A stretch of DNA of 64,000 nt from IMG/VR virus record IMGVR_UViG_3300042545_001134, positions 62,001-126,000 of that record; one strand, given 5' to 3'. The notes beneath the pieces are model-generated. The model was given only the letters and a program-made list of their open reading frames with translations, did not search any database and had not been told where the DNA came from. A program made the translations under genes and the position numbers. Shown here piece by piece: positions 1 through 64,000 of this stretch (position 1 is the first letter of the stretch; every line of letters starts with the position of its first letter).

Positions 1-1327
1 GACCTTTTAATAGTCTACCTTTCTTACTCTTACCTTTTACTTCGTTACCTTCAGCGTAAGTTATATTATATGCCCCAACAATATCGGCATCCTTTAGTTT
101 ACCGTAATCGTCACACTCAATGTTAATACAGGTGAATTTGGTTTTATCCTTATCCTTTCTATTCTCCTTATCCACATTCTTACAAGTTGGACATGTAATA
201 GATGTATCTTTTGGATTCACCCACAGGATTTGAATCCCCACCATCTTTGCTTTATATTCAATATCCGTTTGAAGTTGATAATATGCCCACGATTTTAAAA
301 ACAAATCTTTAGTGTTTGTGGTTATACCAGTTAAGTCCTCCATCTTAATAATACCCACATTGTATTGTTGGGCAATATCAATAACATCCCTACTGATATC
401 GTGATTCATTAACACGGACCAATTGTGTTCCTTTTCCTTTAATCTTTCCATTCCCAACATCTTTCTTGTTCTTCCATGTCCACCCTTGGCAAACTTCATG
501 GATTGTTGAAGTGCTCTTCGTATCTTATAGAACTTCATTCTCTCAGTTTGAATCTTTTCACCGATTGAAATCTGTGATGGTTGATGTTTCTCCCCGTCAA
601 TGTATATTGATACTGGTCTGTTTATACCCAAATCAATTCCCATTACCTTATCAGGAATCATATCCTTTGATTTTGTATCAGGTACTGTACATGTTAATAA
701 TAAAATAAAATCTTCATCCTTAATTTGAATAGAACTGGTGTTCATTTTGTATTCACCATTCAATATTCTATTGACAATTTTTTCATTACCACTTCTATCC
801 CTTCCGTAATGTAATTTGAATTTAATTCCTTTGTGAATACTTCTCTCTGATGACGATAATGGTAAGTTAAAAACATAATCCTCCCCTTCTTTACTCACCA
901 CAGGTTCTTTATTTACCGTACCTTTAAATGGTATTGTTAATGATGTTTTTCTAAATGATGGTATTGACATCTTTCCTTGTAAAATATCATAAAAACTCTC
1001 ATCAATAGTTTTATATATCTTTTGACAAAACGACGATTTTATGTTCGATGATATGATGGTATTTTTCTTCATTAAGTTATAACCCATATTCTCCACCATC
1101 GCCCCGTATTTTTCCTTGAAAATCTCTTTTGATTTAACTTTAGTAATATTAGTTGAATTTTTTATCTCATCCAACTCGTACTGGTTACAAACAGTTAACC
1201 TAATAACTTCGTTTCCAATTTGAACCAAGTCAGATGCAATTCTTTTTACGTAATTGTACGATGCAGTTCTGTCCTTGCTGGTTTCACCAACCGCAATCAA
1301 TTTGATTTTTCTTGTGATTATTGACAT
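1..1327 (-). CDS. cas12f: Miniature type V CRISPR effector, Cas12f-like (TnpB-derived RuvC nuclease); 3' end lies outside the window
   Basis: Manual translation from ATG at 1327 is open to base 1 (>442 aa, MSIITRKIKLIAVG...). Motifs: GKMSIPSF, VMGIDLG (D232), KGGHGR, KMEDL (E330), WAYYQLQTDIEYKA, TSITCPTC / CINIEC zinc finger, DADIVGAYNI (D415). CRISPR array begins 25 nt upstream. Confidence 0.85.
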   Translation of the reverse strand, partial: MSIITRKIKLIAVGETSKDRTASYNYVKRIASDLVQIGNEVIRLTVCNQYELDEIKNSTNITKVKSKEIFKEKYGAMVENMGYNLMKKNTIISSNIKSSFCQKIYKTIDESFYDILQGKMSIPSFRKTSLTIPFKGTVNKEPVVSKEGEDYVFNLPLSSSERSIHKGIKFKLHYGRDRSGNEKIVNRILNGEYKMNTSSIQIKDEDFILLLTCTVPDTKSKDMIPDKVMGIDLGINRPVSIYIDGEKHQPSQISIGEKIQTERMKFYKIRRALQQSMKFAKGGHGRTRKMLGMERLKEKEHNWSVLMNHDISRDVIDIAQQYNVGIIKMEDLTGITTNTKDLFLKSWAYYQLQTDIEYKAKMVGIQILWVNPKDTSITCPTCKNVDKENRKDKDKTKFTCINIECDDYGKLKDADIVGAYNITYAEGNEVKGKSKKGRLLKG

Positions 1328-1692: not shown

Positions 1693-1894
1693 ATGGTTAA
1701 CCCCATCTTATTATGAATCAACATATTGTGAATGATTCCCTTATTAAAAAATAAAAGGTATTTAGTGAGTGAGAAGTTAATCTCCAGAAAAATTCCATCC
1801 TGTTTATTCAGGATTCACTATGGGCTGTACAACCAGCCCCACCAAAGTTTTACCTCTGATGAAAATATATTGAAGTTTCCAATATTTCAAAGAA
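1693..1894 (-). ncRNA. Structured CRISPR leader / candidate tracrRNA-like RNA
   Basis: Non-coding stretch between promoter and first repeat with hairpins (GGGCTG-GTTGTA-CAGCCC 1822-1839; ATCCTG-AATAAA-CAGGAT 1797-1814) and short segments complementary to the repeat. Confidence 0.45.
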
Positions 1895-1899
1895 CAATA

Positions 1900-1930
1900 C
1901 AAAGATACGTGTATTTTTTAGATATCCAAA
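1900..1930 (-). promoter_or_regulatory. Bacteroidota housekeeping-sigma promoter for leader, array and cas12f
   Basis: Minus strand TTTG-N19-TATCTTTG matches the -33/-7 consensus TTTG / TAnnTTTG. Confidence 0.75.
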
Positions 1931-1951
1931 TTTTTTTTTAAAAATATTTTT

Positions 1952-2044
1952 TTATTCATCATCCTCCAACGAATCACTGTATGTGGGTTTATCCTTTGGG
2001 ACATAGTCCTCATCACAATTATCAATATGGTCCTCGTCGTTCAT
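1952..2044 (-). CDS. Possible 30-aa acidic peptide (MNDEDHIDNCDEDYVPKDKPTYSDSLEDDE)
   Basis: Manually read ORF with A-rich upstream region; too short for the ORF track. Confidence 0.3.
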   Translation of the reverse strand: MNDEDHIDNCDEDYVPKDKPTYSDSLEDDE

Positions 2045-2060
2045 AATAGATTTATTTTAA

Positions 2061-2238
2061 ATAACACCCTGATTTATCCAACTTACAGGTGTCGTGGCTG
2101 TCCCCGTTACCGGGTTAGAAATAGACTTTTGGATAGATAGTCAATCTAAATAGAGCCTTTCCCTATCAGAAGTTCCATATGGTTATCACACCACTTCTCA
2201 TCGTATTGGACATACTATCCGGTGATTAACCGAATCGC
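2061..2238 (-). ncRNA. Unidentified structured RNA, copy 1, directly 3' of tRNA-like element
   Basis: Non-coding, duplicated at 3803-3983; differences between copies keep hairpins and a GNRA loop. Confidence 0.6.
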
Positions 2239-2239
2239 G

Positions 2240-2360
2240 TAGTCAGGACAGGAATCGAACCTATAACCAGTTTTCTAAGCCCTACGTGCAGGATTTTCAC
2301 TGCCTCGTACTGGTGTCTAATCGAGCATACACAGCGTTTAACCAATTCCGCCACCTGACT
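2240..2360 (-). ncRNA. tRNA-like element (121 nt) with expanded, non-canonical centre, copy 1
   Basis: Acceptor AGTCAGG/CCTGACT + discriminator A; Leu/Ser-like D arm TGGCGGAATTGGTTAAACGC; T arm ATAGG-TTCGATT-CCTGT; ~70-nt centre with no 7-nt anticodon loop; no encoded CCA. Confidence 0.7.
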
Positions 2361-2548
2361 ATTAGCGTTCTATTAAAAATGGAAGTTATTGCGCCTATAC
2401 CATTTCGTTGATACCACCAATATGGCGTTCATTTTATTCCATTGTTCAAGTTTTGTGAACATTTTCAAATATAGATTTTTATTCCATCATTGCGCCTATT
2501 TTTCTTGCTTTGCGCCTATTTTTTCCACCATAAGGCTAAAATTAGAAA

Positions 2549-2788
2549 TTATTTTCCAAATGTTTCGTTGTAGTATTGTTGAGAGCCAATTACATATTCA
2601 TCTGAAATGCCAAATTTGTAAGCATTCATTATCTCCTGCTTGTGCATTTCTTTGGCTTCGTCAACATCCACTAAAAAATTATCTATCATTGTTGTTCTAA
2701 CAATTCCATCTGGTTCAGATTCTATTATTAAAATTCTTCGTTTCAATTCAGATATTAACCATTCTATACTGCTTTTTTGTTTTTCCAT
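2549..2788 (-). CDS. Small hypothetical protein, paralogue of 2925-3143
   Basis: Both share A(K)EM-KQ-I-N-Y...YYNETFGK; the last 27 nt of the two genes are identical. Confidence 0.7.
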   Translation of the reverse strand: MEKQKSSIEWLISELKRRILIIESEPDGIVRTTMIDNFLVDVDEAKEMHKQEIMNAYKFGISDEYVIGSQQYYNETFGK

Positions 2789-2924
2789 TTTATTTGTTGT
2801 TTAAATGTTTTCTATTTCTTTTTTAATTCTTCATAAATACCACCTAAAATAATCATTATGATTAGTTGTATAAATGTAGTTACCCAATAATAAGCGTGTT
2901 CCATAAGTTTTTTTGTTATTTAAG

Positions 2925-3143
2925 TTATTTTCCAAATGTTTCGTTGTAGTATTTTTCTGCTGTTTCGTATGGCTTATCTCTAAAATGCCACGATTGATTA
3001 TAGCAATTGATGATTTGTTGCTTCTCCATTTCTTTGGCTTGTAAAAGAATATCTTTATACATTTTCCTTAATTCTTCTGAATCAAAAGATACTAATCCTA
3101 ATAATTTTAATTCAATAAATCTTACTGCTGTTTGTTTTTTCAT
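2925..3143 (-). CDS. Small hypothetical protein, paralogue of 2549-2788
   Basis: MKKQTAVRF...QAKEMEKQQIINCY...YYNETFGK. Confidence 0.7.
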   Translation of the reverse strand: MKKQTAVRFIELKLLGLVSFDSEELRKMYKDILLQAKEMEKQQIINCYNQSWHFRDKPYETAEKYYNETFGK

Positions 3144-3532
3144 TTTGTTTGTTGTTTAAGTTTTACAATCTCAATCAGTTTTTTAATACACTCAAGCTCT
3201 GCTTCTTTATAAGTACCATTAAATTTTAAAGGTTCAGTTCCACATAGTCTATTCCATTTATCATTAATAATTAGATAAGAAAACTCTTGAGTACCAACTT
3301 CAATTAATCCTGTTAATCTATATTCTTCTCTAAACCATCTAAATACTTGTTGGTAAATTGGGGCTTTAATAAGATTCTTTTCTAATAAATTAGAATCAAA
3401 CATTTGTATTAGTATTTCACCAGTTGGCTCTTCCCATTCGGTAACAATACAATATCTACCAAAACAAGGTTCATCAAATCCTAATTCTTTTAAAGCTAAT
3501 GCTTCTTGGTATGGCATAAATTCTTTTTCCAT
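3140..3532 (-). CDS. Hypothetical phage protein (ALALKELGFDEPC type)
   Basis: 130-aa ORF overlapping the next start; A-rich initiation region. Confidence 0.7.
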   Translation of the reverse strand: MEKEFMPYQEALALKELGFDEPCFGRYCIVTEWEEPTGEILIQMFDSNLLEKNLIKAPIYQQVFRWFREEYRLTGLIEVGTQEFSYLIINDKWNRLCGTEPLKFNGTYKEAELECIKKLIEIVKLKQQTK

Positions 3533-3721
3533 TTTGTTTGTTGTTTAAGTTATATAATTTGTTAAATGTTTTTTTGGTGCTTGTTAAATGTTTGTATAAA
3601 TTTTTAGTAACGTTTCATGCACTTTGTCCAGTTAATTCATTAAAAGACTGGACATTACACGCCTTTAAATGCTTAAGCCTATTGGCTTTTGTTAATTGTA
3701 CCTATGGTACTTTGTTAATTG

Positions 3722-3800
3722 TAGTCAGGGCCGGACTCGAACCGGATAAACAACCATTTTATTGGACTTGGGCACCATCCCGCATTACGCCCACCTGACT
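3722..3800 (-). ncRNA. Third tRNA-like element (79 nt), same acceptor stem, different centre
   Basis: AGTCAGG...CCGG-TTCGAGT-CCGG-C-CCTGACT-A; D-like stem GGGC/GCCC; no canonical anticodon arm. Confidence 0.6.
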
Positions 3801-3802
3801 AT

Positions 3803-3983
3803 ATAACACCCTATTTTATCCAACTACAGGTGTTAAGGCTGTCCCTATTGCTAGGTTAGGAATAAACTTATTTAAATTAGATAGTCAATCTAAATAGAAC
3901 CTTGTCCTATTAGCAGTTCCATATGAGGAATCACCTCACTTCTCATCGTATTGGACATACTATCCGGTGATTAACCGAATCGC
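3803..3983 (-). ncRNA. Unidentified structured RNA, copy 2
   Basis: Homologous to 2061-2238; flanked on both sides by tRNA-like elements. Confidence 0.6.
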
Positions 3984-3984
3984 G

Positions 3985-4105
3985 TAGTCAGGACAGGAAT
4001 CGAACCTATAACCAGTTTTCTAAGCCCTACGTGCAGGATTTTCACTGCCTCGTACTGGTGTCTAATCGAGCATACACAGCGTTTAACCAATTCCGCCACC
4101 TGACT
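3985..4105 (-). ncRNA. tRNA-like element (121 nt), copy 2, identical to 2240-2360
   Basis: Exact duplicate. Confidence 0.7.
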
Positions 4106-4526
4106 ATTTTTTCTTATTCTTCTTTAATTCTACCACCTTCTCATACTCCTCAGATTCAATTAAATTATCAATAACCATCTTTTCAAATATGTTTTTGTCA
4201 CTTTCATTATCCGATAATTCGTGATGTGCACCACTTTTGAAAAGTTGGTACATACTTTCAAGTGACTTAGAATCGTTCTTCATTTGATAATTTAATGAAT
4301 AGAGCATTAAAGAGTTTAATAAACCAAACCAAGTATGTTCAGATTCGGTAAATTCGGATTCGTCTTTACCTTTGGATAATATTTTATTCCCAACTTCAAA
4401 GATATCATCAATATCAATTGGAGATTTTAATCTGACATCACTGTTTTCAATCAAATCAATCATAATCTGAGGTATGTGTGTATATTTTTTCATGGCACAA
4501 AGATAATCAATATATTCTAAAAACAA
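4104..4526 (-). CDS. Hypothetical protein (true start probably MKKY at 4493)
   Basis: ORF track; promoter-like TATCTTTG lies just upstream of 4493. Confidence 0.65.
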   Translation of the reverse strand: MFLEYIDYLCAMKKYTHIPQIMIDLIENSDVRLKSPIDIDDIFEVGNKILSKGKDESEFTESEHTWFGLLNSLMLYSLNYQMKNDSKSLESMYQLFKSGAHHELSDNESDKNIFEKMVIDNLIESEEYEKVVELKKNKKK

Positions 4527-6080: not shown

Positions 6081-6436
6081 TCTTTTAATACGTTACCATC
6101 AAATATTACTTCAACGGGAATACCTTTTAGTTTATCAACACTACGTACCTTCGCGTCTTTAAGAAGTTTAGAAAGGAACCTCATAGTTTCTGAGTATCCT
6201 TTATCCCTATCTTCTTCTGTCCACTTACAGTGTTCACTCCACTTAATTGATTCAGCGTCCCAATTACCCTTGAAGTCTCCAACTGCCCAACCACCATCAC
6301 CAAGAGTGATAGATAATCCAAGTTGAGAATCTTGATAACCACCAAGACCAAATTGTACCAATTCGATTTTACCTAATTTCTTTTCCATATTTTTTTTATT
6401 TTTAGATTCCACGGAATAACCATGAAACAAATTCAA
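6053..6436 (-). CDS. Hypothetical phage protein
   Basis: ORF track; likely start MEKKLG. Confidence 0.65.
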   Translation of the reverse strand: MNLFHGYSVESKNKKNMEKKLGKIELVQFGLGGYQDSQLGLSITLGDGGWAVGDFKGNWDAESIKWSEHCKWTEEDRDKGYSETMRFLSKLLKDAKVRSVDKLKGIPVEVIFDGNVLKEWRVLTEVL

Positions 6437-6499
6437 TCATTAAGTAACACATCAAAGATATACTACCCAACACTAATAGTGTTGCTAAAATTTTATCTT

Positions 6500-6772
6500 T
6501 CATTTTACTTTAGGCATTAATTCACAATCAAATTTATAAAGTTCATTCACCACCGGAGTGTAACCCTTTATTTTTGTTTTAATTACAATTTCTTTCCTAT
6601 CCTCCAACATCAATCCAACAACCACACTATCATTCCATTGAAATGTCATAACATATGTAATCAGACCAGTGCACGATTTTGGTTTAACCTTTGTTTTTTC
6701 TTTTGGAACATCCTTAAAACTTGATAGTGTTACTATAACAACCATCAATAATAATGTGTGTTTTATTCTCAT
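6500..6772 (-). CDS. Secreted/membrane-anchored hypothetical protein
   Basis: N-terminal hydrophobic signal. Confidence 0.6.
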   Translation of the reverse strand: MRIKHTLLLMVVIVTLSSFKDVPKEKTKVKPKSCTGLITYVMTFQWNDSVVVGLMLEDRKEIVIKTKIKGYTPVVNELYKFDCELMPKVK

Positions 6773-6962: not shown

Positions 6963-7145
6963 TTATTTTCTTAGTTCGTTTAGTTTATCTGAAAGTAAGT
7001 CAACCTCAGTTTTTGTTTCGAGTTCTCCTTCTTCATTTATTTTACCCCACGTTTTTATTAAATTACCCGATATGATTTCATCAAACGTTAATCCACTGTA
7101 ACTACTGTACTGTGAAATTGTGCCCAATATAGATTCTGTTTCCAT
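6963..7145 (-). CDS. Hypothetical protein
   Basis: ORF track, tight packing. Confidence 0.5.
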   Translation of the reverse strand: METESILGTISQYSSYSGLTFDEIISGNLIKTWGKINEEGELETKTEVDLLSDKLNELRK

Positions 7146-7268
7146 AATATTTTATTCTTTTAATTTGTTAGCAACCCATTCAGGGTCATTTTTAAATTCT
7201 TTCCATGTGTCGAAGTCCTTCAACGACTCAATGATTTCTAATAATCTATCTATTGTATCCATAATATT

Positions 7269-57795: not shown

Positions 57796-60700
57796 TTAAA
57801 TTTCTTCCAAAGTTATGCGGTATTTCTTACCATTTAAGTTATTGATTATGTATAGGTTTTCATCACCCTCTTGGATTGTCCACGTACCACTTGTTCCGTC
57901 AATATCGTTACCTTCGGGTTTATTCATGTTACTTAGGTGTAAGTCATTCGTGTAAATGTTTCTCCAACCTAATGATGCTGAACCCAAATCGTATGCGTTA
58001 TTTGTGGTTGGTAAGAAGTGTCCTGTTGTATTCCAAGAACCATATATTGTACCACCATATGAACCACCATAGTTCACTCTAACACCCCATCCACCGATTT
58101 CATTTAATATTCCAATACCCGCAGCGTCCCAATAGAAACTACCTTTGTAGGTTCCTTGGTGACCCAATCTCATTCTTATTTCACCGTAAGATGCGTTTGT
58201 AGAACCAACTGTCCAACTTGCGTTGTTTTCTGAATACCAATGGTTATTCGTAGCCTCATTATAAAGACCTTCATTTACCTGATTATTTCTAAACCAATTG
58301 TTGGCATAAATGTCAACAAATGTTGGTGAGTTACTAGTTGATACTCTTTGATTCTCTAATGGTTGGAAACGAGCATCTGACTCTGTTTCTGTAAAGTATC
58401 TGTCGTCATGAGTGTGTGATGACTCAGCGTATTTTCCATCGATATCAACTGTTACAGTTCCACCGTCATTTCTTGTCATGGTGATAACACCGGTTGACGT
58501 ATTGAATGTTGCTCCGGTCACATAATAGTTTGTATCGACATATGATGTGATGTATCCACTGTTGTTTGTGAACTGAGAAATGTTCATTGAGGTTAGTGCA
58601 CCTGCGGTGGTTGCATATGTTGCGGTTGCCGCATTTCCTGATGTGTTTTGGTTCCACGTCGGAACTGTTCCAGTTAATCCACCATAATCAACATTGGTTG
58701 CGGTGGACGCGTTACCTATAAAATTACCACTATTATCAATGTAAGATACATCGGTTCCGTTTCTTCTAAACTGAACAATTCTATCCGAAGCACTGTCAGA
58801 TACTATATACCATCTTGCTGAGTGATATTGTATTTTTCCTTGTGTACCTGGGTCACCCGTCCAGTTAGAAGTAGAATTACTTCTTATATCGGTATTTGTT
58901 ATTGTTATAGTACCGGTCATTGTACCTCCACCTAAAGGTAGATAAGAACTTAACGAAGATGCCGCCGCGTAGTATGAACCATGTTGACCATCTAATAAGT
59001 CGGCATCAAGTCCCGAACTCGCTCCGTCATTTCCTGCGTGCCATACTGTGTTACCTCTAATAGTTACGGCACCTGCATTATCTATCTTGAAATCATTTAG
59101 ACCATATCTACCCATTACAACTGTGTAATCGGCAAATGCCTCAATCACAGGTAAACCTGAAATTGTGTTAACCGAGAAGATTGAATCGGTCATGTCATCG
59201 GTGATTGTAAACAATCTACCATTAACACCATCAACGGTCAATGCCTCAGTTCCGGCAACCGTACTATTAACCTTAACAGTTTTTAAGTTTGAGGTACTTG
59301 CTGGATTTAAGTAATAATTTGTGTCGTTACTATCGTAGTAAATTGGTGCATATACTGCAGTTGTAACGTGAACGTTTTGTGAGTTATCACAACGTAACGA
59401 CCAGTTTCCACCTGTGTTTAAGAAACCAATTTCATTTGAGGTGTTTGCGTATATATAACCTCTTAATGCACTTACGTGACCACCCGTGTAGAACCTAATA
59501 CCAGAATAAGTTGTGGTACTTGACATATCCCAATATCCATTTGAATTTGAGGACAAGTGCTGTGTTGTTACCTCATTATAAAAACCGTCGTTTGATTGGG
59601 TATTTCTAAACCAATTACTCGCATAAATATCGGTACCGGTTATTGTTCCAGTCACACCTAAATTACCTGATGCATCTAAAGTTGTTCTAACATTACCATT
59701 TACAATTAAGTTTAATGGATGGTTTGACATTGTACCCATTTTACCCGCTCCGTTTCCGGTGTGGGAATACATGGATGTTATGATTCCGTCACTTACTGAA
59801 ACAACATCAAGTCTTGCATGTGCCGTACCTGCAATGTTTACTCTTGCATTCCAACCACCATCATTTGAGACGCTACCATGTCCATCACCAAATTCATTAT
59901 ATGAGTTTGAGAATGTGTTTATTCCCGAGAAACCATTATCTCCCGAAAATGTGAGGTTGGTTGAAGTACTTGCACCTCTTGCAGTTACAGACGCTAACGT
60001 ATCTGTTTCAGAATACGATTCCAAATATCTACCATCAATATCAACAGTTACAGTACCACCGTCATTTCTTGTCATGGTGATAACACCAGTTGATGTATTG
60101 AATGTGGCTCCCGTTATATAATTGTCAGTTACTGTTTCAGTTGCTGTCGATAAACCTATAACGTGTCCAAAACTATCTAATAATATATCTTGAATGTAAG
60201 TTCTTCCTGAGTTGTCGGATGAAGATGCCGCAGCCACCGATGGGTGAGCAGTTAAATAAGTACCAAGTAGTTGGTATCTTCCATCCAAATTAGGAACAGT
60301 CACCGTACCACCGTCATTTCTTGTTAATGTGATAACACCAGTTGATGTATTGAAGGTTGCACCTGTTACATAATAGTTTGTATCGACATATGATGTAATA
60401 TAACCACTGTTGTTTGTGAACTGAGAAATGTTCATTGAGGTTAGTGCACCTGCGGTGGTTGCATATGTTGCAGTTGCCGCATTTCCACTAATATTAGTTT
60501 GGTCTCCAGTGTTTGTTCCTGAAGAAGAACCACTAAAGTTTGACGCTGTAAATGTTCCGGCAATTTGCATATTACCATTACCCACATTTAATGCAGCAAT
60601 TGGTGTACCACCATCAGTTCCCCAAGTAAATCCTCTAGTTGCCCCATTACTATCAATGTTGGTCTTTATAGAATAATCGGTAACCGGACCATAATGATAT

Positions 60701-63700
60701 TCGGCACTGTTACCCATGTGGATTTTATATAAATCAGAACCTCCCCAGAATTTTAATCCATTACCAGCACCCGCTGTTACACCATAAGATGCGTTTAGAT
60801 TACTCGCGTTTGGTGCGGAACCTGCTGTGGTTGCATATGTTGCGGTTGCCGCATTTCCTGATGTGTTTTGGTTCCACGTTGGGATGTTTCCTGAGTGATA
60901 TACTGTGTACTCTGTCAGACCTGCACCAATCCTAACAACCAATCCGTTTGTGTTAACAGGATTCAATACGATTATATCATCCGCATCATTTGATACACCG
61001 ATAACCAATCTATTCGATTCACCTGACGAACCTCCAATACCAAATGCATGATATTGAATGAAACCAAAATCAGATGGGTGATTAATATTTGAGCCATCTC
61101 TTTCAGATTCGAAGAAGATACCACTAACACCAGTACTGTTACCTTTTAATACGATGTTATCCGCACCCGTTACATAATTTGATTCCGTTGTATATGTACC
61201 TCTTGATAATGAACCACCAACGGTTAAACCACCAATGGTTATGTCATTTGTTGTTGATGCTCCTCTTGTTGTTACAGACGCTAATGTATCGGTTTCAGAA
61301 TATGATTCCAAATATCTACCATCGATATCAACTGTCACAGTTCCACCGTCGGTTCTTGTCATGGTGATAACACCATTACCAGTGTTGAATGTTGCACCTG
61401 TTACATAGGTGTTGGTGTCAGTAACAACCGAGAAACCAGTAACTGTTACAGTTCCTCCGTTTGATTTGGTAAGTGTTAATGTACCTGCACTGTACGTACC
61501 ACCCGTAACTGTAACGTCCGAAATGGACTCCAACATGGTGACGTTATATGTGTCACCATTATTTCTGGTGAATGTTAGAACCGCAGTTGACCCATTCCAC
61601 GTTACTCCCGTGGTGTAGTTATTGGTATCAACATACGATGTAATCCATCCAGGATTTGTGGATACACTACCGTCGGCCATTAAGAACTGAGAAGAACTTC
61701 CTCCACTCTTAACAAGTGAAGTTGCCGTTAATGCCCCCGCATTGGTTATTGTTACTATATTGGTCGCACCACCGTTTCTAAATACAAAATCACCTCCACC
61801 TGTGTTTTGGAAATATAAATTGTTTGAGTGCCATTGAATTTTGTTTTCTTCTCCTGTCCAACTACCGTAGTTACCTTTTAATGCATAACCACCGGCAATT
61901 GTTAAGTTGTCATCAACATAAACAGAACCATTGAAGTATGATGTTCCGTTGTTATAAAAAGTATATCCGGAGTTGGCTCCACCTATTGAGACATTTCCGT
62001 TAACAAAGAGTTTAACTCCTGAAACGGGTGATGCACCCATCGCAATGTTTCCACTAGTATTAAGATGGAAATCGTTTTGATTATAACGACCCATTATAAC
62101 TTTATTATCAGCGAACGCCTCAATTACGGGAACACCCGCAATTGTATTAACTGAGAATAATGAGTTACTTAAATCATCTGTGATTGTAAACAATCTACCA
62201 TTAACACCATCAACCGTGAATACTTCTGTTCCACTTGCTGTACTGTTTAATTTAACAGTTGATAAGTTTGAAGTACTTGCCGGATTTAAATAATATGCGG
62301 TGTCATTAATATCGTAGTAAATTGGTGCGTAAACTCTACCTGAACCATCTACTCTATATGTGAATGATGAACTGTCCGTTCTTAATGCGTAACCATAAGT
62401 GGCCCCTGCGGCAATGTTTACATAAATACCATATTCTGATTTAGAACTGTTATATGCGTTGAACTGTGCCAACCAGTCATTGTTGTTTGTTGCGGTTACA
62501 TATAAAGTGGCATCTTGAACTGTGTTACTATTTCCACCATCAATCCAAAGACCTCTATTATCATAAGTTCGAACCATTGTTGATTCGGTTTGGTAGATAC
62601 CACCACCATGTGTTGAGTTGTACCAACCAGTATTTCCACTACTTCTAAACCAATCACTTGCGTTAAATGAAGCGGCATAAACGTAATCAGTTGATGGATT
62701 TACATAAACTTCAGCGGTTCCATAAACCGCATTTCCTGAACCCCATAATAATTGATAGTTACTGTTACTATTATTGTTGTAACTAATTGCCCCAAGATAC
62801 GTTCCCGCCTCTTGGTACTTACCATCGATATCAACTGTTACAGTACCGCCATCATTTCTTGTCATGGTGATAACACCAGTTGATGTATTAAATGTTGCTC
62901 CGGTTACATAATAATTTGTGTCGGTATCAACAACTGTTTCACTTGCGGTGGTGATTCCGGTGATGTGACCAAAACTATCTAATAAAATGTCTTGTATGTA
63001 AGTTCTACCTGAGTTGTCTGAAGAACCAGCAGCACTTACTGAAGGGTGACCTGTTAAGAACGCAGATGCGTGTTGACCATCAAGAGTATCCGCATCCAAC
63101 CCACTTCCACTTCCATCATTACCAGAATGCCAAATTCTATATCTAACGTTACCTACTGACCATCCACCCCATACTAAGTCATTTTCTGCACCACCTAATC
63201 CGAAGTAACCCGCATAATCTCCACCAATGTGGAATGTCATATATGCATCAGCACCTGCGGTATCTTGGTAGACAGTTAATCCCCTATTAGCGGCGGCAAC
63301 TGTATTAATAAATGTATTTGATGTTTGATAAAACTCGGCAGTTCTTGTTGTTGATGCCCCACGAGAAAGTACACTATCTAATGTATCGGTTTCAGAATAA
63401 CCAGTTATGTATCCACTATTATTTGTAAACTGAGAAATATTCATACTACTCAACGCACCAGCAGTATCGGCATAACCCGCATAAATCTTATACCAAGAAC
63501 CCCACGTAGTTGCTTCTCTTGTTCTAAATGTTACATACCTATCAGAAGTATTATATCTTGGGATTGCCAACTGCATTGCGTAGTTAGCAAATGAATAATC
63601 ATTACCAAGTCCCAAAGTAAATCCGTAGAATTGTGATGAACCCGTACCCGGACCGTTTGTTGACCCATTCACATATCTCGCTCCAAAGTCTCCAACACTA

Positions 63701-64000
63701 TTAAAATCGGTGTAGGTACTATGATTCTGACCCATGTTATTGAACAAACGATGTTCGTCTGTCATATCATCTATTACCGAATGGGTGTGTGATGATTCCG
63801 CATATTTTCCATCAATATCAACCGTGACTGTACCACCATCATTTCTTGTCATGGTGATAACACCAGTTGAAGTATTAAATGTTGCTCCCGTTACGTAATA
63901 GTTCGTATCGGTGTTAACTGATGATATATCAACCGGACTACTAAACGCCCCTCCTGAACCGGTAAATGTTAAATTAGTGCCGTCAAAAGTAACATCACTA
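57796..64000 (-). CDS. Very long modular tail fibre (>2060 aa; start outside the window)
   Basis: Frame stays open from 63852 to the window edge (SDVTFDGTNLTF...). Multiple internal repeats; C terminus AYDLGSASLGWRNIYTNDLHLSN...WTIQEG. Confidence 0.88.
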   Translation of the reverse strand, partial: SDVTFDGTNLTFTGSGGAFSSPVDISSVNTDTNYYVTGATFNTSTGVITMTRNDGGTVTVDIDGKYAESSHTHSVIDDMTDEHRLFNNMGQNHSTYTDFNSVGDFGARYVNGSTNGPGTGSSQFYGFTLGLGNDYSFANYAMQLAIPRYNTSDRYVTFRTREATTWGSWYKIYAGYADTAGALSSMNISQFTNNSGYITGYSETDTLDSVLSRGASTTRTAEFYQTSNTFINTVAAANRGLTVYQDTAGADAYMTFHIGGDYAGYFGLGGAENDLVWGGWSVGNVRYRIWHSGNDGSGSGLDADTLDGQHASAFLTGHPSVSAAGSSDNSGRTYIQDILLDSFGHITGITTASETVVDTDTNYYVTGATFNTSTGVITMTRNDGGTVTVDIDGKYQEAGTYLGAISYNNNSNSNYQLLWGSGNAVYGTAEVYVNPSTDYVYAASFNASDWFRSSGNTGWYNSTHGGGIYQTESTMVRTYDNRGLWIDGGNSNTVQDATLYVTATNNNDWLAQFNAYNSSKSEYGIYVNIAAGATYGYALRTDSSSFTYRVDGSGRVYAPIYYDINDTAYYLNPASTSNLSTVKLNSTASGTEVFTVDGVNGRLFTITDDLSNSLFSVNTIAGVPVIEAFADNKVIMGRYNQNDFHLNTSGNIAMGASPVSGVKLFVNGNVSIGGANSGYTFYNNGTSYFNGSVYVDDNLTIAGGYALKGNYGSWTGEENKIQWHSNNLYFQNTGGGDFVFRNGGATNIVTITNAGALTATSLVKSGGSSSQFLMADGSVSTNPGWITSYVDTNNYTTGVTWNGSTAVLTFTRNNGDTYNVTMLESISDVTVTGGTYSAGTLTLTKSNGGTVTVTGFSVVTDTNTYVTGATFNTGNGVITMTRTDGGTVTVDIDGRYLESYSETDTLASVTTRGASTTNDITIGGLTVGGSLSRGTYTTESNYVTGADNIVLKGNSTGVSGIFFESERDGSNINHPSDFGFIQYHAFGIGGSSGESNRLVIGVSNDADDIIVLNPVNTNGLVVRIGAGLTEYTVYHSGNIPTWNQNTSGNAATATYATTAGSAPNASNLNASYGVTAGAGNGLKFWGGSDLYKIHMGNSAEYHYGPVTDYSIKTNIDSNGATRGFTWGTDGGTPIAALNVGNGNMQIAGTFTASNFSGSSSGTNTGDQTNISGNAATATYATTAGALTSMNISQFTNNSGYITSYVDTNYYVTGATFNTSTGVITLTRNDGGTVTVPNLDGRYQLLGTYLTAHPSVAAASSSDNSGRTYIQDILLDSFGHVIGLSTATETVTDNYITGATFNTSTGVITMTRNDGGTVTVDIDGRYLESYSETDTLASVTARGASTSTNLTFSGDNGFSGINTFSNSYNEFGDGHGSVSNDGGWNARVNIAGTAHARLDVVSVSDGIITSMYSHTGNGAGKMGTMSNHPLNLIVNGNVRTTLDASGNLGVTGTITGTDIYASNWFRNTQSNDGFYNEVTTQHLSSNSNGYWDMSSTTTYSGIRFYTGGHVSALRGYIYANTSNEIGFLNTGGNWSLRCDNSQNVHVTTAVYAPIYYDSNDTNYYLNPASTSNLKTVKVNSTVAGTEALTVDGVNGRLFTITDDMTDSIFSVNTISGLPVIEAFADYTVVMGRYGLNDFKIDNAGAVTIRGNTVWHAGNDGASSGLDADLLDGQHGSYYAAASSLSSYLPLGGGTMTGTITITNTDIRSNSTSNWTGDPGTQGKIQYHSARWYIVSDSASDRIVQFRRNGTDVSYIDNSGNFIGNASTATNVDYGGLTGTVPTWNQNTSGNAATATYATTAGALTSMNISQFTNNSGYITSYVDTNYYVTGATFNTSTGVITMTRNDGGTVTVDIDGKYAESSHTHDDRYFTETESDARFQPLENQRVSTSNSPTFVDIYANNWFRNNQVNEGLYNEATNNHWYSENNASWTVGSTNASYGEIRMRLGHQGTYKGSFYWDAAGIGILNEIGGWGVRVNYGGSYGGTIYGSWNTTGHFLPTTNNAYDLGSASLGWRNIYTNDLHLSNMNKPEGNDIDGTSGTWTIQEGDENLYIINNLNGKKYRITLEEI

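Follow-up and report, generated by a model that had tools for sequence, protein, structure and literature searches.

Phage T4 encodes two small stable RNAs of unknown function, rnaC (species 1, 139 nt) and rnaD (species 2, 119 nt), at the end of its tRNA cluster. rnaD and rnaC start 1 and 6 nt after the preceding RNA, so tRNA-processing enzymes can free them. The large phage RNAs GOLLD and ROOL (500-800+ nt) are often encoded near tRNA islands, and have ornate multi-pseudoknot folds, no known protein partner and no known function (PMC12286853, PMC5737381). GOLLD has one conserved and one variable half, and GOLLD and ROOL form cages through intermolecular contacts (PMC12286853). The phi29-type packaging RNA (pRNA) is a phage RNA of about 120-170 nt in which two loops carry covarying 4-nt complementary sequences; it has a 5'/3' closing helix and a three-way junction, and its loops pair between molecules on the portal. 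The freshwater-1 RNA (Rfam RF02979) is a simple 62-nt structured motif of unknown function from freshwater metagenomes.

The sequence examined here is a 64,000-nt window (positions 62,001 to 126,000) of IMG/VR virus record IMGVR_UViG_3300042545_001134. A preliminary description had proposed that two copies of a structured RNA of about 180 nt lie in this window, that they differ in their 3' two-thirds while keeping their structure, and that each starts next to a tRNA-like discriminator. This observation was confirmed in every sequence detail, and was understated. The two copies are paralogous genes of a widespread, apparently undescribed family of intricately folded RNAs carried by uncultivated lake-water phages, mostly inside their tRNA gene clusters. 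What the RNA does is unknown, but its conservation and its knots and loop contacts show that it is under strong selection.

The two copies and their tRNA-like flanks

Both copies lie on the minus strand, copy A at 2239-2061 (about 179 nt; type A with a short middle domain) and copy B at 3984-3801 (about 184 nt). A covariance model of the family found exactly these two copies in the window, at 2062-2242 (181.4 bits) and 3804-3987 (176.4 bits). An orthologue of copy B is present in another phage contig. Pairwise alignment showed 172 nt of perfect identity, made of an upstream tRNA-like unit plus the first 48 nt of the element, whereas the remaining ~139 columns were ~77% identical.

Each copy begins right after the discriminator A of an identical 121-nt tRNA-like unit (2240-2360 before copy A, 3985-4105 before copy B, both on the minus strand). 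This unit has an AGUCAGG/CCUGACU acceptor stem, a D arm and a T arm, but a 59-nt insert replaces the anticodon arm. It was scored as tRNA by Rfam at 37.3 bits with the insert, and ARAGORN found no tRNA in the window. The first bases of the unit before copy B overlap the stop codon of the ORF at 4104-4526. A further 79-nt tRNA-like unit (3722-3800, minus strand), 5 nt downstream of copy B, has the same acceptor stem, is below the Rfam tRNA threshold and has no clear anticodon arm. The lack of a recognisable anticodon arm in the flanking units had been missed in the preliminary description, as had the P4 hairpin and the two pseudoknots and kissing loop presented below.

Predicted fold and its support by covariation

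Two copies alone would be weak evidence, and single-sequence folding gave z-scores of only -1.1 and -2.0. The decisive support came from homologues, the search for which, together with a test for covariation, had been set out beforehand. Two independent exact-pattern scans of IMG/VR gave 77 + 44 further loci, all confirmed with the covariance model and all in uncultivated phage contigs of 4-335 kb; a collection of metagenome contigs was not scanned, as the viral scans gave enough loci. On 51 distinct sequences, 92.4% of pair cells were standard pairs, against 81% in shuffles and 27-52% when partners were slid, and 19 of 29 pairs showed compensatory changes. The RNAs are 140-250 nt long. Their 5' core (P1-P5) is shared by all members, while the 3' domain is exchangeable (types A, B and a 'type C'), the shorter type B keeping the 5' core with a different 3' domain.

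Covariation supports seven hairpins, two pseudoknots (PK1 and PK2) and a kissing contact. All features are on the minus strand, with coordinates given first for copy A. P1 (AUUCGG-UUAAUCA-CCGGAU) is at 2217-2235 (copy B: 3962-3980); all five pairs counted on one family alignment (A2) showed compensatory changes, as did four of six on another (A5). P2 (GUAU-GUCCA-AUAC) is at 2203-2215 (3948-3960), and is followed by the near-invariant junction GAUGAGAA at 2195-2202 (3940-3947; family consensus GAnnRGAA in A2, A5 and a third alignment, A6). P3 is GUGGU-GUGAUA-ACCAU at 2179-2194 and GUGAGG-UGAUU-CCUCAU at 3923-3939, with compensatory changes between the copies and across the family. The P2 loop bases UCCA (2207-2210) pair with UGGA 3' of P3 (2174-2177; 3918-3921), forming PK1, in which all 4 pairs covary and 88-95% of cells are paired. 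The P1 loop bases AUCA (2223-2226) and the P3 loop bases UGAU (2185-2188) form the kissing contact, which was 91.5% paired with 13 double changes against 2.5 in shuffles.

P4 is GAUAGGG-AAAGG-CUCUAUU at 2149-2167 and AAUAGGA-CAAGG-UUCUAUU at 3893-3911; on A5, 98.9% of its cells were paired and 3 pairs showed compensatory change. P5 (UAGAU-UGACU-AUCUA) is identical in both copies (2134-2148; 3878-3892) and also covaries across the family. Its loop bases GACU (2139-2142) pair with AGUC at 2124-2127 (copy B: AGUU at 3865-3868) to form PK2; the partner sequences change together across middle-domain classes, and in type B the partner is the 3' tail. The near-invariant single-stranded UAUUUCUAAC follows at 2114-2123 (3855-3864; family consensus UAUUCCUAAC). 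P6, with its GNRA loop, is CCCG-GUAA-CGGG at 2103-2114 and CCUA-GCAA-UAGG at 3844-3855, with two pairs covarying in 13 and 21 sequences, and is followed by the conserved GACAGCC at 2096-2102 (3837-3843). The terminal P7 hairpin (ACACCU...AGGGUGU; 2064-2092 and 3806-3833) has a 7-bp stem, and its 15-nt loop GUAAGUUGGAUAAAU matches the family's conserved loop motif. One locus found with an independent pattern has a fully different stem (CCGUUU/AAACGG) around a similar loop. Some 'invariant' blocks were part of the search patterns, and this ascertainment bias affects GACAGC..ACACCUG..AGUUGGAUA in the first set and AUAGUAUG..GAUGAGAA in the second, whereas UAUUCCUAAC was in no pattern used. Structured RNAs this intricate are rare, and RNAs of such complexity have often turned out to be ribozymes, sensors or cores of RNA-protein machines.

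Other pairings were examined and rejected. An 11-nt tetraloop receptor (UAUGG / CCUAAC) was excluded because the GG covaries with the P2 loop instead, a UAGGA/UCCUA long-range helix was replaced by the covarying local P4, and the CGUG of a 5' CACG / 3' CGUG closing helix in type B belongs to a covarying local hairpin. The P5 loop and PK2 were considered as a mimic of the AGUCAGG acceptor stem, but the PK2 sequence varies freely among classes, so the match is ancestry or chance.

Comparison with known RNAs

A strong match to an Rfam family had been named in advance as a result that would count against the proposal, and none was found. With Rfam 15 (4227 models), only tRNA hits on the flanks appeared at the gathering threshold. 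At E<=10 nothing meaningful overlapped the element in the window, the only overlapping hit being a Tetrahymena C/D snoRNA model at 18.8 bits against a threshold of 100, and nothing overlapped it in 17 diverse loci. Over the window and 35 related loci, the Rfam searches returned only tRNAs, noise and one freshwater-1 RNA (74.3 bits), a different and much simpler motif which lies in the same tRNA island as a type B element without overlapping it. A box C/D or kink-turn reading of GAUGAG...CUGA was also rejected, as copy B has CUAA instead of CUGA. There was no match in 50,697 GenBank phage records, and two independent diagnostic patterns gave no hit in 185,579 bacterial and archaeal species genomes. 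No description of this RNA was found in the literature searched, although overlap with the csRNA catalogue of PMC10690425 was not checked.

The family shares with T4 rnaC and rnaD its placement directly after a tRNA in a phage tRNA cluster, and the 5' end of rnaD (AUGAGAAACCGG..CCGGU) resembles J2/3 plus P3. The model match to rnaD was only 6.1 bits over its first 23 nt (E 0.06 in 1.8 kb, filters off), which does not establish homology and leaves a common origin undecided. rnaD lacks P1, P2, both pseudoknots and the kissing loop, and the hosts and phage lineages are unrelated. The phage setting near tRNA islands and an ornate multi-pseudoknot fold with no known protein partner are shared with GOLLD and ROOL, and GOLLD likewise has one conserved and one variable half, but there was no similarity to their Rfam models, and these larger RNAs also occur in prophages of cultured bacteria.

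The P1-loop/P3-loop contact might be intermolecular, with the RNA assembling into rings or cages as phi29 pRNA, ROOL and GOLLD do, since its 4-5-bp complementarity covaries as the pRNA loops do, and covariation does not distinguish contacts within one molecule from contacts between molecules. This is not excluded but is considered unlikely, although oligomeric state was not measured, because P1 and P3 are only about 25 nt apart and flank a pseudoknot, which favours an intramolecular contact, and because the RNA is 3-4 times smaller than ROOL or GOLLD. Unlike pRNA, it has no 5'/3' closing helix, has two pseudoknots, occurs in very different phages including 300-kb ones, and gave no Rfam pRNA hit.

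A divergent housekeeping RNA (tmRNA, RNase P RNA, 6S, SRP, rRNA fragment) or a decayed tRNA duplicate without function is very improbable. The element does lie among tRNAs, and ARAGORN found a tmRNA elsewhere in one related locus, but it found none in the window, and the 5' and 3' ends of the element do not pair. The UCUAAC-hairpin-GGACAG and the P7 loop looked like 23S H79-80 and the 16S 3' end, but local alignment to E. coli 16S, 23S and 5S rRNA scored no better than shuffles. Extensive compensatory change rules out decay.

A Cas12f1-like (Cas12f/TnpB-like) ORF (2-1327, minus strand) and a mini CRISPR array with a 36-nt repeat (1353-1694) lie 370 nt from copy A, and scaffold RNAs of such nucleases are 130-250 nt and pseudoknotted. 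A tracrRNA or guide-scaffold role is nevertheless effectively refuted, as complementarity to the repeat was no better than in shuffles (6-7 nt against a mean of 6.2), neither end has a variable guide segment, and none of the eight most widespread neighbouring protein families of the first-scan loci was a nuclease of this kind.

Genomic context, expression and possible role

Most members sit inside tRNA islands, with up to 22 tRNAs found by ARAGORN around the element and, as a rule, one copy per locus and not one per tRNA. The junction to an upstream tRNA or tRNA-like 3' end is fixed to the nucleotide in 46 of 69 distinct members, in which a T-loop motif lies exactly 30-34 nt upstream of AUAGU, peaking at 32 nt. 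Many members are followed within a few nt by another tRNA, but about a third stand alone among small ORFs with no upstream tRNA. Of elements with no detected downstream tRNA, 16 of 34 have at least 6 U in the 10 nt after P7, compared with 3 of 22 when a tRNA follows. Expression had also been listed among the points to be checked: metatranscriptome contigs matched copy A with 1 mismatch over 173-223 nt, and many freshwater, river, estuary and marine RNA libraries hold words of the family. These were assembled contigs, which give no RNA ends, so the processed species and its size are inferred, and they could contain DNA and partly come from relatives.

The interpretation in the preliminary description, a functional phage ncRNA released by tRNA-processing enzymes, was partly supported: the functional ncRNA is strongly supported, whereas the release is plausible but not shown, and cannot be the universal route given the members without an upstream tRNA. 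The fold, its maintenance by covariation, the shared core with its exchangeable 3' domain, and the fixed junction in two thirds of members are results of the analysis; what follows is inference, held with moderate confidence. The RNA would be transcribed with the tRNAs, in phages whose hosts are probably Bacteroidota. The RNA would be cut out as a discrete stable species, its 5' end made by the enzyme that trims the upstream tRNA after its discriminator (RNase Z type), and its 3' end by RNase P acting on the next tRNA or by a U-rich stop after P7 where no tRNA follows. It would then act in trans as a folded RNA, neither antisense nor leader, with the invariant unpaired residues (5' CG, AUAGU, GAnnRGAA, AUAU, UAUUCCUAAC, GGACAGC and the P7 loop) held in a pocket or surface that binds a partner. 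Given the company it keeps, that partner most likely belongs to tRNA or translation metabolism during infection; the window encodes a PolyA_pol-head (CCA-adding type) enzyme and a HAD_SAK_2 RNA-repair protein.

No partner was identified from gene neighbourhoods. Clustering of 970 ORFs from the loci of the first two scans gave no protein family tied to the element, the recurrent families being lineage-specific (a T9SS-domain protein, an HNH endonuclease, a Clp-type protease and HAD_SAK_2). Downstream neighbours are assorted tRNAs or unrelated small ORFs, which does not fit a riboswitch or attenuator whose terminal hairpin plus U-run controls transcription into downstream tRNAs or genes. The U-run in about half of the members lacking a downstream tRNA, and the conserved, complex aptamer-like core with a variable 3' domain, agree with such a cis-acting regulator. 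However, this reading is very unlikely, as the P7 loop is conserved, unlike an expression platform, many members are followed within 2-5 nt by a tRNA with no terminator, and the element is often the last RNA gene of its island or sits between tRNAs.

The knotted 5' core might instead be a ribozyme that cuts at its own 5' edge, creating the 3' end of the upstream tRNA or tRNA-like unit, or that performs another RNA-processing reaction in the island. The fold is compact, about 20 invariant unpaired residues are concentrated in junctions, conservation starts with an invariant CG 1-2 nt after the discriminator, and the phage encodes end-healing-type enzymes: a HAD_SAK_2 RNA-repair protein, a Metallophos protein and a PolyA_pol-head (CCA-adding type) enzyme. 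This possibility is not excluded but is doubtful; self-cleavage was not assayed, one copy per island of up to 22 tRNAs argues against a general processing device, and host RNase Z and RNase P suffice to explain the ends. There was no match to the hammerhead, twister, twister-sister, pistol, hatchet, HDV-like or glmS models, and GAUGAGAA only superficially resembles the hammerhead CUGAUGA, with no GAAA after the next stem. More speculatively, and only as a tentative suggestion, the RNA could be a new kind of RNA machine specific to phage tRNA islands, either a new ribozyme class acting on tRNA-type substrates, or a self-assembling or decoy RNA that protects or reprogrammes the unusual AGUCAGG-stem tRNA-like RNAs against host tRNA-directed defences.

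The family, which is abundant in freshwater phage contigs, adds a small member to the unexplained group of phage RNAs that travel with tRNA genes (T4 rnaC/rnaD, GOLLD, ROOL). With its size, well-defined covariation model and natural domain-swap variants, it is much easier to probe, crystallise or image than GOLLD or ROOL, and could therefore help to test why phages keep ornate RNAs in tRNA islands. The accompanying anticodon-less tRNA-like units, with one shared acceptor stem, are a second puzzle that may be linked.

Two diverged gene copies and their family

The structured RNA was found in two copies, both encoded on the minus strand, copy A running from 2239 down to 2061 and copy B from 3984 down to 3801. 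The preliminary description, in which two copies of a structured RNA with compensatory differences were noted, had placed them correctly, although it had not assigned them to the minus strand. Each copy is preceded, with no spacer, by an identical 121-nt unit (2360-2240 and 4105-3985), which Rfam scored as tRNA at 37.3 bits, with a 59-nt insert where the anticodon arm should be. ARAGORN called no tRNA anywhere in the window. Five nt after copy B lies a 79-nt tRNA-like unit (3800-3722) with the same acceptor stem, AGUCAGG/CCUGACU plus A. Pairwise alignment showed 172 nt of perfect identity, comprising the tRNA-like unit and the first 48 nt of the element, while the remaining sequence was about 77% identical. 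The differences previously listed in hairpins P3 and P6 are compensatory, and every motif that had been cited was found in place. The observation itself was confirmed and extended. Single-sequence folding was unremarkable (z = -1.1 and -2.0), and two copies alone would therefore not prove much.

The absence of homologues elsewhere had been listed among the outcomes that would argue against the RNA, and three scans of IMG/VR were performed. An exact scan with the invariant 19-mer of hairpin P5 found genuine relatives, a pattern from the 3' domain found 77 loci, and an independent pattern from the 5' domain found 79 loci, 44 of which were new. A covariance model built from an alignment of 51 distinct sequences scored every one of these loci, with 108-200 bits for type A and 68-88 bits for a shorter type B, and found exactly the two copies in the 64-kb window. 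The contigs are 4-335 kb. One of them (L013, 310,691 bp) carries both copies with the spacing seen in the window and is presumably the source phage, whereas a different 76-kb contig (L012) has a copy-B-type gene with another 5' part and no upstream tRNA-like unit. The two window copies are thus diverged paralogues, and recent homogenisation of their 5' parts is inferred. There is normally one copy per locus. In locus L024 a second, divergent copy (6372-6592, minus strand; 55.8 bits), which lacks the P7 hairpin, lies about 400 nt downstream of the main copy and is separated from it by two tRNA-like units, and locus L014 gave a weak second hit (7056-7212; 20 bits).

Nothing similar was detected elsewhere. 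A search of 50,697 GenBank phage records gave no match, even at E<=1, and both patterns gave zero hits in one genome for each of 185,579 bacterial and archaeal species. A strong Rfam hit would have counted against an unnamed RNA, but no Rfam 15 family matched at E<=10, either in the window or in 17 diverse loci, and no description of the RNA was found in the literature searched. Readings of the element as a housekeeping RNA or as an rRNA mimic were both rejected by the tests performed. It should be noted that blocks used as search patterns are invariant by construction, and that members found with the other pattern show what really varies; for example, locus L109 keeps the P7 loop but has an entirely different, still complementary stem.

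Covariation and the predicted fold

Covariation across homologues had also been named in advance as a criterion. RNAalifold and explicit pair counts on the alignment of 51 sequences supported P1, P2, P3, P6 and P7. Overall, 92.4% of cells were paired, against 81% in shuffles and 27-52% with slid partners, and 19 of 29 pairs showed compensatory change. A reading of the element as a non-functional duplicate was rejected. A second alignment, of 27 5' halves, added two hairpins, P4 (GAUAGGG-AAAGG-CUCUAUU), which had not been noted before, and P5, which is invariant between the two window copies but covaries elsewhere.

Three tertiary pairings emerged. In the first pseudoknot (PK1), the P2 loop (UCCA) pairs with UGGA just 3' of P3, and all four pairs covary, for example CUC/GAG, CCU/AGG, AUCC/GGAU, ACUA/UAGU and GCCA/UGGC. 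In a kissing loop, AUCA in the P1 loop pairs with UGAU in the P3 loop; the variants seen were GUCA/UGAC, AACUA/UAGUU, AACA/UGUU, GCCA/UGGC, UAAU/AUUA and UCAU/AUGA, and 91.5% of cells were paired, with 13 double changes against 2.5 expected. In the second pseudoknot (PK2), the P5-type loop pairs with the 4-7 nt just 5' of UAUUCCUAAC. The PK2 partner sequences change together between middle-domain classes: GACUAU/AUAGUC, AACUAU/GUAGUU, GACCGU/AUGGUC, GUUCAGU/GUUGAAC, AUCA/UGAU and AGUCA/UGACU. In the window, the P5 loop UGACUA (hairpin at 2134-2148) equals the 3' acceptor strand of the flanking tRNA-like units (2240-2247), and its pseudoknot partner (A)UAGUC equals their 5' end (2354-2360). As the pairing sequence varies in other classes, this is probably ancestry or chance.

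The type B subfamily (loci L082-L125, e.g. L091:5913-6084 and L096:3867-4038) is about 140-165 nt long and has the same 5' core. Its 3' domain differs, as UAUUCCUAAC, P6, GGACAGC and P7 are replaced by a different hairpin with a conserved AAAGAACAAC loop, and the P5 loop pairs with the 3' tail UAGUCA. The constant part is therefore the knotted 5' core (P1-P5 with PK1, the kissing loop and the PK2 loop strand), whereas the 3' domain is modular. The unpaired residues held by this scaffold are nearly invariant, namely CG at the 5' end, AUAGU, GAnnRGAA and AUAU in both types, and UAUUCCUAAC, GGACAGC and the P7 loop A(A)G(U/C)UGGAUAAA in type A.

Association with phage tRNA islands, and expression

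ARAGORN and Rfam showed the element inside phage tRNA islands of up to 22 tRNAs. One island also has a tmRNA, and another, which contains a type B element, has a freshwater-1 RNA (Rfam RF02979, 74.3 bits; L111:74-135, minus strand). In 46 of 69 distinct members, a T-loop motif lies 30-34 nt upstream of AUAGU, with a mode of 32 nt, so that the element starts 1-2 nt after a discriminator, and in 29 of those 46 the upstream 3' strand is exactly (C/U)CUGACUA. About a third are followed closely by another tRNA. Where none was detected, 16 of 34 have at least 6 U in the next 10 nt, against 3 of 22 when a tRNA follows. About a third stand alone among small, co-oriented ORFs. Clustering of 970 neighbouring ORFs from the loci of the first two scans gave no protein family tied to the element, and a cis-regulatory leader fits the context poorly.

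The tRNA-like units (2240-2360, 3985-4105 and 3722-3800 in the window; loci L002, L028, L039, L076 and about 70 others) all share the acceptor stem AGUCAGG/CCUGACU plus A, a D arm and a T arm, but have a variable middle (70-150 nt in total) instead of a recognisable anticodon arm. About 130 instances were counted in 73 of 121 loci, and a 71-nt unit in L002 has only a UCA-GAAA-UGA mini-hairpin. They look like natural 'tRNA scaffolds' carrying other RNA modules, and were missed by ARAGORN in the window and in several loci checked. Directly after the element, in L029 (285-560), L049 (minus strand, downstream of 2719), L069 (4680-4820) and L079 (1912-2030), lies a second conserved RNA-like block, AAUGCACCAUUCU ... 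CCCAAGG..GAGCAGUUGUAA ... UUACAACUGAGUGCAGAG, with long complementary arms and no Rfam match.

Proteins with the type IX secretion CHU_C domain, which is confined to Bacteroidota and their relatives, occur in 12 related loci. Together with the A-rich, Shine-Dalgarno-less start regions and a TAtaTTTG box upstream of copy A, seen by inspection, this points to Bacteroidota hosts. The box, which is similar to the Bacteroidota -7 element, lies among three exact copies of ATAGGCGCAA (2389-2398, 2490-2499 and 2510-2519, minus strand) within 130 nt upstream of the tRNA-like unit of copy A. These copies occur exactly nowhere else in the window, and this may be a promoter or operator of the RNA operon.

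Absence of expression had been listed among the outcomes that would argue against the RNA. DNA runs from lake water contain the whole stretch, and several dozen metatranscriptomes contain sequence words of the family. When assembled contigs from four RNA libraries were aligned to positions 1700-4300, contigs matched copy A with one mismatch (2012-2234 and 2062-2234), and there was also depth over the tRNA-like units, but none over most flanking coding sequence. This is consistent with expression but is not proof, as contigs carry no ends or strand, DNA carry-over is possible, and conserved RNA genes of relatives map more easily than their coding flanks. The apparent skips inside the 121-nt unit are other tRNA-like units with different inserts, not splicing. 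A 30-codon acidic ORF (MNDEDHIDNCDEDYVPKDKPTYSDSLEDDE; 1925-2043, minus strand) starts 18 nt after copy A and is followed by an A/U-rich stretch, and the contig at 2012-2234 runs from copy A into it.

Possible mode of action and neighbouring genes

The analysis demonstrates a discrete, strongly constrained RNA gene, placed like a tRNA gene within phage tRNA polycistrons. Its release by the enzymes that trim the neighbouring tRNAs, or termination by a U-run where there are none, and its subsequent action in trans through its folded shape are inferences. The earlier interpretation, a functional phage RNA released by tRNA-processing enzymes, was thus supported in part: the RNA is functional and phage-borne, but its processing route is inferred. 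The layout is that of T4 rnaD and rnaC, which begin 1 and 6 nt after the preceding RNA gene. The only sequence link is a 6-bit match of the rnaD 5' end to J2/3 plus P3, which is a lead and not homology. The genomic setting and ornate fold recall GOLLD and ROOL (PMC12286853), but neither the size nor the models match. The complexity of the fold also leaves room for a catalytic role, for a self-assembly role if the kissing loop is intermolecular, and for a decoy or partner role for the odd AGUCAGG-stem tRNA-like RNAs, none of which was assayed here. The element represents an apparently new RNA family, within the already known but unexplained category of structured RNAs that phages keep with their tRNA genes.

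Near copy A, at 1353-1694 and 2-1327 (minus strand), lies a phage-borne miniature CRISPR-Cas12 locus. Its CRISPR-like array has 5-6 copies of the 36-nt repeat GTTGTATACACCTTTCAAATAAGAGGTATTTACAAC at 65-67-nt spacing, with one repeat truncated, and abuts a compact Cas12f1/TnpB-like ORF of more than 442 aa that runs off the window (Pfam Cas12f1-like_TNB, 1.3e-14; OrfB_IS605). A tracrRNA role of the element for this Cas12f-like gene was tested and rejected. The gene content of 4000-64000 fits a very large phage, and includes a CCA-adding-type nucleotidyltransferase (PolyA_pol-head), a HAD_SAK_2 RNA-repair protein, a Band_7/SPFH protein, thymidylate synthase, a DNA methylase, glutamine synthetase-like and UDP-galactopyranose mutase genes, several glycosyltransferases, and a 2018-aa ORF at 57796-63852.
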